From Amoeboaphelidium protococcarum X5 (Eukaryota; Fungi; Aphelidiomycota): a DNA stretch of 64,000 bases. Positions 9,169 through 11,668 of this stretch are shown piece after piece; within the stretch, counting starts at the first letter, position 1; the number at the start of each line of letters is the position of its first letter. Position numbers and translations under genes: made by a program. The stretch lies in NCBI GenBank assembly GCA_023515725.1, contig JALDTO010000158.1, positions 186,001-250,000 on the forward strand. Direction: 5' to 3'. The notes beneath the pieces were generated by a model, which was not told the origin of the DNA, did no database searches, and was given only the letters and a program-made list of their open reading frames with translations.

Positions 9169-11668
9169 TTGTAATAATTAGGACTTATTACAAAAAAGCC
9201 GTAACGGGTCATGACCGTGTGACGCGGGCGATGTGTGACACGAGTACTAATAACACGCTCGGAAAAATTTGTCAACTTTTCTTTCGCTTCCTGACCATCA
9301 ACACAATATGCTATCATCACCCACTCAATAGAGACATCGAGAAAACGATCTGTATCTGCAGTAAAGGGCTCAGGAGACTTATGAGCTGGCAGCGGAGAAT
9401 AGGCCGGAGAATACTAATTTGGCATACAACCCAAAGCAGATTGAATTTCAAGATTGGTGTACTGAGCGTTAATTCAGAGACAGAGATACAGTGTCCGGGG
9501 AGAAATTGCATGCATTTGTGAGCGATATGGTGGTTGGCAGACCGAGTAGAACTGATCCCACTGTCACTGTTGGTGCTCCTACAGTCAATTCATATGTGGC
9601 AGCTATCACAGATTTGTATAAGTAGTAGAAGCTTCGCAACATGAACAACTACCCTCCGCCTCGAGAATTTCCGGCAGTGAAGCAGTTACTTCATCAAGTG
9701 AGAGGAGCGCAAGATTAGGTAAATAGGCGCAATTATGCTGATAGAATAGCAGGTACCATAGCTGATGGCTATTCGAGTGTCGAAGAGCTGCAGAGAATTG
9801 CAGATTGGTTCATGAACTCAGGAGGTCGGAACGGGCTGCGTGACAGATTTATGTTCCTCATGGCGCACTATTGCTTATTACGTGGCGAGTCTTTAAGATC
9901 TTTGGAGTTGGCTGATTTATATGCCATCAAATTGGAAAATGAAGGATTCACTGAGTGTTGGGCATTACTGGTACTCATGTGTTAAGGCAAAACCAATCAG
10001 TTCAATCGTAAAGAGTTTGGCTCATGCCTCAGAAATAAGCGCGTTGAAATATGCCCTTTCGGAGCATTGGCTCTTTATTTATTTCAGCGTTGGCATGACT
10101 TTAATGAGCCGTTTCCTGATTTGACTAGTCCTCAAGATTGGTTTTAGATCAAAGTTTGTCGAGCTCGTGGACTTACTGAAGAGATGACTTACCAGACTCA
10201 TTATAATGCTGTCAACAAGTGCTTGAGGGCCTGTAACATTCAAAGCAGTGCCAAGACTCATATCGGACGTGGTGCAGGTGCACGTATGGCAGAGTTGCAG
10301 GGTGCGTCTGAAGGTGATATTCGGCGCTTGGGGAGATGGAACAGCCAGGCGATGGAAGGCTGCTATTTGACTGCACTGCCCAGAGGAGCGATGAGATCTT
10401 TGGCTGGTTTCCCTACTGATTCCGGATCATTCTATTTAGATCGAGGATAAATTGATCCGCCTGAACATTTACAGAGATTGATATTTCCAGAAATTGATAC
10501 GTATGTTATTGCAGAACTAGCGCATACGACAACCGCCGGGTTTATTAAGCTGCTTAAGTACATGAGGATTGTTGTTTTGTAGGACGCGGCTATTATGTAA
10601 GATTAGTATCCAGATTAGACTCTCTTTAATCATGCTCTATTTAGAAGTCAGGATTTTTTGCATTATAAAGAGTAACTGCTTGCTGCTCGGATTAATAATC
10701 TACCGCCTACCGAATTGAGATTGTAATAGGCTATGCCAGAGTTGGTAAATAAGATCGATTCTGTTGGTCATTCTCTTCACGGCAAGATCGATGTTTTGAA
10801 TCATAAAGTTGAACAATATGCTCATTCAAATACTCAAGTGCGCAATACTCTGAATGATTTACTCAATGGACGCACTGCAGTCCGGTTATATGCTGAGCCA
10901 TAAGCTGCTAATCATGTGCTGCATTAGCCGCCTATTTAAATTGATTTGAATGCGCCTAACGTCTTACAGAATCAAGTTGGTGATAACATTGATATTATAC
11001 CTGCTCGAGCTCTTCCACCGCAGTAGTATACCATGTCTCGTGGGCTGTCAACTGTTCAGGATGTGTGGAGGGAGTATAAAGAAGGCATTGGTGGTAATCC
11101 ATCAGTTGAATCATTGGAGTAATAATTTGGGGCCAAGTGGAGAAGCAAAGACAGTGAAAGGAAGCATTTTTCTAGGCGTTTAGTTATATACAAATTTATT
11201 CAGAGTAAGATTGATAGTGGACTTTCGGAAAATGACGTTCTCACTGCTTTGGAGCGAAAGCGCCTTGGTGATAAGCTGTCACTGGACAATCTATAGAAGA
11301 AAATTAAGTCCAGGGAAATTGATATATGACTTGCTTGCGTCGACTTTTATATATATATATTTATCATGTAACCTTGAATTTAGACTTCTTTGTAATACAT
11401 TTTTATAAAATTCAAAAATTCTTTACATATCTGCATACTGAGCAATATCAATGTCATGTTTGGTATAGTCCAAGAAAATTCGGCTTTGAAATACAACATG
11501 CACTGTTTCAGCCAATTCTCAGTCACAGCAATGAAGAATAAACGGTACCGGAAAATTTTAGAATAACTAAAATAACTCTAGTTATTCTGTGACAATTCTT
11601 GTGACAAGTTTAATGGTTTGTTTGTGACCTCGCGCGAAATCTTGTGACCCAAATTGGGATAATTACAA
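9169..11668 (+). mobile_element. CryptonF-type tyrosine-recombinase DNA transposon (ends inferred)
   Basis: Intact YR+GCR1_C ORF flanked by similar palindromic sites at 9169-9193 and 11642-11668 and by subterminal TGTGAC clusters. Confidence 0.7.
9308..11329 (+). CDS. Crypton tyrosine recombinase with NDC10-II-like catalytic domain and C-terminal GCR1_C DNA-binding domain (673 aa, intronless)
   Basis: RPENTNLAYNPKQIEFQDWC; LLRGESLR; QGKTNQ; KTHIGRGAGA; LGRWN; CYL; YTMSRGLSTVQDVWREYKEG...KWR...FSRR. No in-frame TGA, about 23 in-frame TAA/TAG. Confidence 0.92.

Follow-up and report, generated by a model that had tools for sequence, protein, structure and literature searches.

How a Crypton recognises its own ends is the question raised by a stretch of 64,000 nucleotides (nt) from the aphelid Amoeboaphelidium protococcarum X5 (contig JALDTO010000158.1, positions 186,001 to 250,000), which is referred to here as the window. 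It has been reported that Cryptons, which are tyrosine-recombinase DNA transposons of eukaryotes, carry short terminal repeats and share microhomology with their targets (PMC3212892, PMC9977147, PMC13465315); the papers that we found on Cryptons contain no description of arms, a spacer or subterminal repeats, only of a 4–6-bp repeat. An earlier note on this DNA had proposed that a Crypton lies here between two directly oriented palindromes comparable to lox or dif sites, with TGTGAC arrays at both ends. We found that positions 9178–11664 of the window are a copy of a CryptonF transposon, a very young one, in the genome of this parasite of algae. The class itself is already known and the element is an ordinary and apparently active member of it; what is newly resolved is the cis-architecture of its ends. 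We consider it probable that these ends have an arrangement similar to the attachment (att) site of phage lambda, with hybrid junctions after integration and GTGAC repeats as candidate accessory sites.

The element and its copies

A search of the A. protococcarum assembly (23.6 Mb) gave nine full copies of the element, seven of them without differences from the window copy and one about 99% identical. The left end was common to ten assembled and two metagenome copies, and the right end was identical to the base in all copies except one from a JGI metagenome (L071), a full copy with three internal differences in which the right junction has TA in place of TT. Another JGI metagenome contig (L070) provided an extra insertion site, with the left flank ...GCGATAA. 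Since the flanks were different in every assembled and metagenome copy, the element is mobile in the sense used for CryptonF. All strings named in the earlier note are present in the window at the positions it gave, and its expectation that breakpoints would fall inside the two outer ones proved correct: the homology of all copies ends within these two sites and in no case elsewhere. The element has no terminal inverted repeats and no long terminal repeats, and its terminal direct repeat of 4–6 bp matches the target, as in other CryptonF elements. Three small open reading frames near the element ends gave no match in database look-ups.

Two contigs consist of the element only, and their first and last bases are exact element termini. 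These contigs (G000:C313, 1–1083, and C309, 1–1400) may represent collapsed extra copies or extrachromosomal DNA. Besides, an apparent partial-plus-full tandem was observed on C214 (L009 and L014, G000:C214:709403-712147). It was considered as a nested insertion and rejected, as the two parts meet across a single N, which is a scaffold gap; the 247-nt piece is derived from a variant copy with 98% identity and an altered left arm, TTATTAAGA.

The recombinase gene of the element is open throughout, with no in-frame TGA before the final stop (frame 9308–11329), and was profile-searched as separate pieces between its in-frame TAA and TAG codons. Four of these pieces matched Pfam NDC10_II, which represents the tyrosine-recombinase fold, and two adjacent pieces matched the C-terminal domain GCR1_C (PF12550) with E values of 5e-10 and 1e-8, over the curated cut-off. 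The reading of TAA and TAG as glutamine (Gln) was confirmed because two pieces were 100% identical to the 673-residue NCBI protein MIR68_009202 of A. protococcarum (P0004), which was used as the full-length protein in alignment A1. When compared with ten relatives in this alignment, the catalytic residues R192/R197, K228, H318, R321, W344 and Y353 were invariant or nearly so. The open frame, the NDC10_II and GCR1_C matches and the conserved catalytic residues together indicate that the gene codes for an intact CryptonF recombinase, composed of a tyrosine recombinase and GCR1_C. With this protein, mobile copies and a short terminal direct repeat, the identification of the element as a Crypton was well founded. 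Other recombinase paralogs in the genome (L024–L026, 29–37% identity) carry no TGTGAC.

The two junctions

The outer strings are a left palindrome of 25 nt (9169–9193), with perfect 9+7+9 symmetry, and a right string of 27 nt (11642–11668); inside them lie AGAATAACTA-N9-TAGTTATTCT at 11560–11588 and GGTCATGACC at 9207–9216. In the earlier note the outer strings were read as two complete, directly oriented lox- or dif-like palindromes, one per end, which would recombine together. The perfect left site of the window copy is in favor of this reading, which is otherwise highly improbable. Each site combines host with element DNA, the right one is no palindrome and contains a single arm with no second, and the left palindrome is absent from all other copies, half of it being host DNA (TTGTAATAA). 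The other copies have unrelated 9-mers in place of this half, with only (A)TA at −4 to −2 in common. Similarly, the pattern seen by eye in both sites is composed of host DNA and the usual terminal direct repeat of Cryptons, 6–7 nt in length (ATAATT here, ATANTT generally): what the two junctions truly share is ATANTT on the left, which reads ATAATT at the right end. The paralogous empty site of the window insertion, located on C200, reads TTGTAATTACAA. The insertion split a host near-palindrome, of which TTGTAATAA and ACAA are the halves, and this explains both the perfect left palindrome and the likeness between the sites.

Perfect 9-bp inverted repeats with spacers of 6–8 nt numbered 2 in the window versus 1.1 in shuffled sequences, and perfect 10-bp inverted repeats numbered 1 versus 1.6. 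By themselves the inverted repeats are unremarkable; it is the clustering of TGTGAC and the placement of both sites across the exact ends of a repeated element that exceed chance.

Target preference and crossover

Insertions occurred at ATAN|TT, with ATAN preceding TT in 7 of 10 cases (P about 9e-10). Empty sites, as known for CryptonF, were located for six insertions. They were at hand because the genome looks duplicated or hybrid: nearly every locus examined has a second copy in the assembly with 80–93% identity (L012, L052, L060, L062, L064, L066 and L081; L029 versus L030). Three paralogous empty loci (for L003, L006 and L007; 80–93% identity) consist exactly of the left flank, TT and the right flank; TT is single in the empty sites L060, L064 and L066, and the empty site of L004 is compatible with the same structure. 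Thus, TT was present once before insertion and is present at both junctions after it. In the window copy this crossover dinucleotide occupies 9178–9179 and is repeated at 11663–11664.

Two insertions depart from a simple 2-nt exchange. L002 (G000:C146:496295-498801) is located inside a host repeat with three identical empty copies (L055–L057), and its sole differences from them in approximately 700 bp are at positions 3 and 7 of the 7 nt that follow GGGATAA. Both changed bases belong to the right junction, where they lie no more than 5 nt beyond the crossover TT, and they yield a tandem ATAATT-ATAATT. For L005 (G000:C155:434822-437313), paralogs of the left and right flanks were found on different contigs (L052 on C298 and L081 on C146), homology breaks exactly at the element ends, and the right-junction heptamer TTAGGAA matches the element's own spacer at 6 of 7 positions. 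This copy may reflect a Crypton-mediated rearrangement, a hint that the element is capable of causing rearrangements, as described for CryptonF-1_cRei (PMC9977147).

Immediately 3′ of the cut, 3 of 10 targets (P about 3e-6) carry the word TTGTAA(T/A), which corresponds to part of the element's left arm in reverse complement; they are represented by the empty sites of L002, by L052 and by the right flank of L008. In the window copy (9169–9175) this word lies 5′ of the cut.

A proposed core on the joined ends and its conservation

When the ends are joined, they read TTGGGATAA - TTAGGAC - TTATTACAA, in which the arms match as inverted repeats at 7 of 9 positions and the 7-nt spacer starts with the crossover TT. 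A complete core appears only where the ends are joined, neither integrated junction being a full element-encoded site, and the order of arm, spacer and arm on the joined ends corresponds by analogy to the usual geometry of a tyrosine-recombinase core. The right-terminus pattern TGTGAC-nn-AA-n-TT-nnn-ATAA-n-T was found in the genome only at ten Crypton right ends. With one mismatch allowed, matches in the genome equalled the control, and therefore no relic ends were recognised there.

Relatives with available DNA were obtained from one metagenome scan and one protein search. The window element represents family A; the others are family B (L072, L073; protein P0001), family B′ (L074; protein P0002, 80% identical to B) and family C (L075–L077, three contigs with different flanks; protein P0003). 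Termini of A and C were set by copies with different flanks, and for B and B′ they were assigned in part by analogy. Protein identity to the window element is 45–47% for B, B′ and C (alignment A1), the family B gene is open in the standard code, and a BLAST comparison of B with the window element aligned only 187 nt of coding DNA. All four families, A, B, B′ and C, have the right-terminus pattern given above, with GTGAC at exactly −21 (alignments A2 and A3). The left terminus consists of a spacer nTA(G/A)Gnn followed by TTAT(n)TA and then by GGGTC..TGACC..GTGAC; B′ and C retain TTAT(n)TA as the arm, and the GGGTC..TGACC..GTGAC block is conserved in A, B, B′ and C (alignment A3). Joined ends read ATAA - 7 nt - TTAT in A, B′ and C. 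One family C contig, L076 (JGI 3300066482), is without the first 15 nt of the element and has its junction at an internal target-like ATAC|AT.

These data bear on the explanation that there is no structured core, so that the terminal ATAATT pairs with the target ATANTT, and the arms and the palindrome are coincidental in AT-rich DNA. This explanation is consistent with the published model, which requires just a 4–6-bp repeat (PMC3212892, PMC9977147), as well as with the chance rate of perfect 9-bp inverted repeats, the host origin of half of the palindrome, and the host half-sites, which beyond ATA match the arm at 16 of 45 positions (hand count, window copy excluded; not significant). However, ATAA - 7 nt - TTAT is found again in each of A, B′ and C, together with the arm bases next to it, in surrounding DNA that is otherwise unalignable (in B), and the ATA of the target matches the inner part of the element arm. 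We therefore regard the absence of a core as improbable.

More distant relatives are L078, L079, L082 and L083. In L079 (JGI 3300067093), a relative with 36% identity, clusters of GGGACC/GGTCC take the place, at both ends, of the GTGACC of the closer families; protein and repeat word may change in step. No recognisable ends or repeats were found in L078 or in the relative from Riccia (L082), and L083 has a GTCAC/GTGAC cluster upstream of its gene, with a terminus that could not be placed.

Subterminal GTGAC repeats

TGTGAC occurs on the plus strand of the element at 9218, 9234, 11588, 11600, 11623 and 11643, and once in inverted orientation at 11522. As a single word it is not enriched in the window (38 versus 33.7 expected), and the number of TGTGAC pairs genome-wide was 107 versus 106 in the control, roughly 40 of the 107 being within Crypton copies. 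Across the genome of 23.6 Mb, triples (4–30 nt apart) were confined to Crypton copies and three other loci, and the reversed-pattern control gave 0. With triples nearly confined to the Crypton and pairs at the control level, ordinary promoters are without such clusters, and the concern of the earlier note that they might be equally dense there can be set aside. Among the GTGAC/GTCAC words in the element, 6 of 10 are in the terminal 110 nt, and the concentration of GTGAC in this part was significant in family A (P = 7e-5), in B′ (P = 2e-6) and in C (P = 2e-3).

The position of the repeats is also conserved. On the left, GTGAC is at +42/43 in A, B′ and C, and A and B′ carry another one at +58/59. 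Arithmetic on the coordinates places the start codon at +131 (A), +237 (B′) and +139 (C), and the last repeat 315 (A), 445 (B′) and 280 nt (C) past the stop codon; the spacing of the repeats is kept relative to the termini and not relative to the gene. Counterparts of the inverted repeat at 11560–11588, with the form AAATAAC...GTTATTT, precede the right-end repeats of families B, B′ and C. The earlier proposal that the TGTGAC arrays are part of the element was thus upheld. Because the arrays belong to the element, are rare elsewhere and are conserved in position, an accessory role like that of the lambda arm sites is a reasonable reading.

The main alternative accepts the ends and the crossover as described and takes the GTGAC repeats and the AATAAC hairpin for transcription signals that are read by the host, not for recombinase sites. 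Those on the left would then serve as promoter elements and those on the right as a terminator, or else a promoter would be assembled only on the circle junction. It is true that the left repeats lie 70–90 nt upstream of the start codon, that GGTGTGAC has been reported upstream of two secreted-protein genes in the window, and that two paralogous host loci, on C124 and C192, share a triple TGTGAC approximately 70 nt upstream of a TATA-like box, the three words being conserved and the spacers between them not. Yet the clusters are no general promoter feature, pairs matching the control without Crypton copies; the positions are fixed to the termini, whereas families differ by more than 100 nt in how far the repeats lie from the start and stop codons; and the word is kept in families of other hosts, at least one of which (B) uses the standard code. 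On balance, we judge this alternative unlikely.

Outside the Crypton, triple or quadruple TGTGAC was observed only at G000:C124:3741-3784 and C192:109278-109321 (L029, L030) and at C57:118640-118710 (L031). A second multi-copy repeat, with three TTGCAC within 29 nt, was present at many loci (e.g., G000:C98:713888-713916, C68:4-32 and C132:5-33), twice just 4–5 nt from the start of a contig.

Table 1. Features of the CryptonF copy and its junctions, in positions of the window
Feature	Positions	Strand	Description
Mobile element	9178..11664	+	2,487 bp common to all copies, from TTAGGAC... to ...GGGATAATT
Host half-site TTGTAATAA	9169..9177	+	Left arm of the palindrome; outside the element
Spacer TTAGGAC	9178..9184	+	Junctions of all copies are here; 7-nt spacer at the same place in families B′ and C
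Element left-end arm TTATTACAA	9185..9193	+	Inverted partner of the right-end arm at 7/9 positions
Left subterminal block	9206..9239	+	GGGTCA/TGACC inverted pair at 9206–9216; TGTGAC at 9218 and 9234 (GTGAC at +42 and +58)
Recombinase gene	9308..11329	+	673 codons; 23 in-frame TAA/TAG read as Gln; ends in TGA
10-bp inverted repeat	11560..11588	+	Built on AATAAC / GTTAT
Right subterminal array	11588..11648	+	Four direct TGTGAC; GTGAC at −76, −64, −41 and −21 from the end
Element right-end arm TTGGGATAA	11654..11662	+	Followed by crossover TT at 11663–11664; all copies end at 11664
Host flank ACAA	11665..11668	+	Remaining half of the host near-palindrome that was split; different in every other copy

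Discussion

The lambda-like arrangement that we favor for the ends of this young CryptonF may be described as follows. The left junction (attL) consists of a half-site from the host with ATAN at its end, the 7-nt spacer TTAGGAC and the arm TTATTACAA; the right junction (attR) consists of the arm TTGGGATAA, TT and host DNA. The full core would be formed on the joined ends, presumably in an excised circle, with imperfect inverted arms (ATAA and TTAT innermost) and a spacer of 7 nt between them. The element-encoded recombinase would recombine this core with ATAN|TT targets, with strand exchange probably at or just after TT. The (T)GTGAC(C) repeats, which flank the core at the fixed distances of −76, −64, −41, −21, +42 and +58 with an inverted pair at about +30, are most likely accessory ("arm-type") sites, which would assemble the recombination complex and tell ends from targets. 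Their putative reader is the GCR1_C domain or the N-terminal domain of the same protein. It is a more tentative idea, and one about which we have some doubt, that CryptonF elements generally use a lambda-like complex, with a core on the joined ends, arm sites read by GCR1_C, and identity needed only at the first 1–2 bases of the 7-nt overlap.

Several observations weigh against the arrangement proposed for the ends. The arm match of 7/9 is weak when taken alone (P roughly 0.01–0.02, an estimate), and the joined-end sequence, whether as circle or as tandem, was absent from the assembly. Searches of the genome with the terminal 133 and 185 nt as queries gave full copies only, with no short derivatives or solo ends, and thus none of the non-autonomous derivatives that would delimit the minimal cis sequences. 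As the words of the C124/C192 cluster are conserved upstream of a TATA-like box, a host factor may also read TGTGAC, and Gcr1 of Saccharomyces cerevisiae binds another word, the CT box. Observations on the cleavage stagger point in two directions. The right junctions of L002 and L005 contain, within 5 nt after TT, bases that are foreign to the host site, which suggests an exchanged region of 6–7 nt round TT. On the other hand, in all informative copies (6/6) the left base was of the target type and the right base of the element type, and this constant pattern fits a 2-nt exchange, not a long overlap with random segregation.

A parallel is found in phage lambda, whose attP has two inverted core sites for the integrase (Int) round a 7-bp overlap, with arm-type copies of another word on both sides. 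The target site of lambda is simple and the integrated junctions (attL and attR) are hybrid; the reaction needs identity of the overlap and host bending proteins, and the arm sites are read by the N-terminal domain of Int. The core with flanking repeats proposed for the window Crypton would follow the plan of lambda attP and Int, and its integrated junctions are hybrids as well. Unlike lambda, its target has little in common with the element beyond ATAN|TT, and its putative second DNA-binding domain is the C-terminal GCR1_C. Tn916 and CTnDOT, bacterial conjugative elements that also use tyrosine recombinases, insert into many AT-rich sites and require just 0–2 nt of identity beside one cleavage site. 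They tolerate heterology in the 6–7-nt overlap and carry variable coupling sequences at both ends; in contrast, the left spacer of the window Crypton is constant in all copies. The arm-spacer-arm geometry to which the earlier note appealed is that of Cre/loxP and Flp/FRT, but those sites are complete, identical on both partners and in no need of accessory sites, whereas the Crypton junctions are incomplete.

With regard to eukaryotic elements, the window copy resembles described CryptonF elements (the Crypton-Cn1 group, and CryptonF-1_cRei of Chlamydomonas) in having one gene with a tyrosine recombinase and GCR1_C, no terminal inverted or long repeats, a 6-nt terminal word (ATAATT) that matches a similar target word (ATANTT), and an intergenic insertion whose target is single in empty sites (PMC3212892, PMC9977147). 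It differs from them in its host, an aphelid in which TAA and TAG code for Gln, and in its inverted arms round a 7-nt spacer and position-fixed GTGAC, features common to at least three further families. Starships, with their "Captain", are likewise eukaryotic DNA transposons with a tyrosine recombinase and short direct repeats that reflect the target; they differ from Cryptons in belonging to the DUF3435 recombinase family, in being giant cargo elements, and in often having terminal inverted repeats (PMC10104507). A circular intermediate of a Starship has been reported (bioRxiv 10.64898/2026.09.21.753150).

The question of how Cryptons recognise their own ends is now narrowed to a candidate core of about 25 nt and about 140 nt of flanking repeats, on the basis of identical copies, base-exact ends, empty sites, and three related families with the same plan. 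Should CryptonF elements indeed use a lambda-like complex, theirs would be the first attachment site to be defined for any eukaryotic transposon with a tyrosine recombinase. A self-contained eukaryotic integrase of 2.5 kb with a defined site could serve as a tool, provided that the protein is functional outside its host. Finally, if the repeats are indeed read by GCR1_C, this would point to the ancestral DNA-reading role of a domain that yeasts later turned into Gcr1, Hot1, Msn1 and Ndc10.

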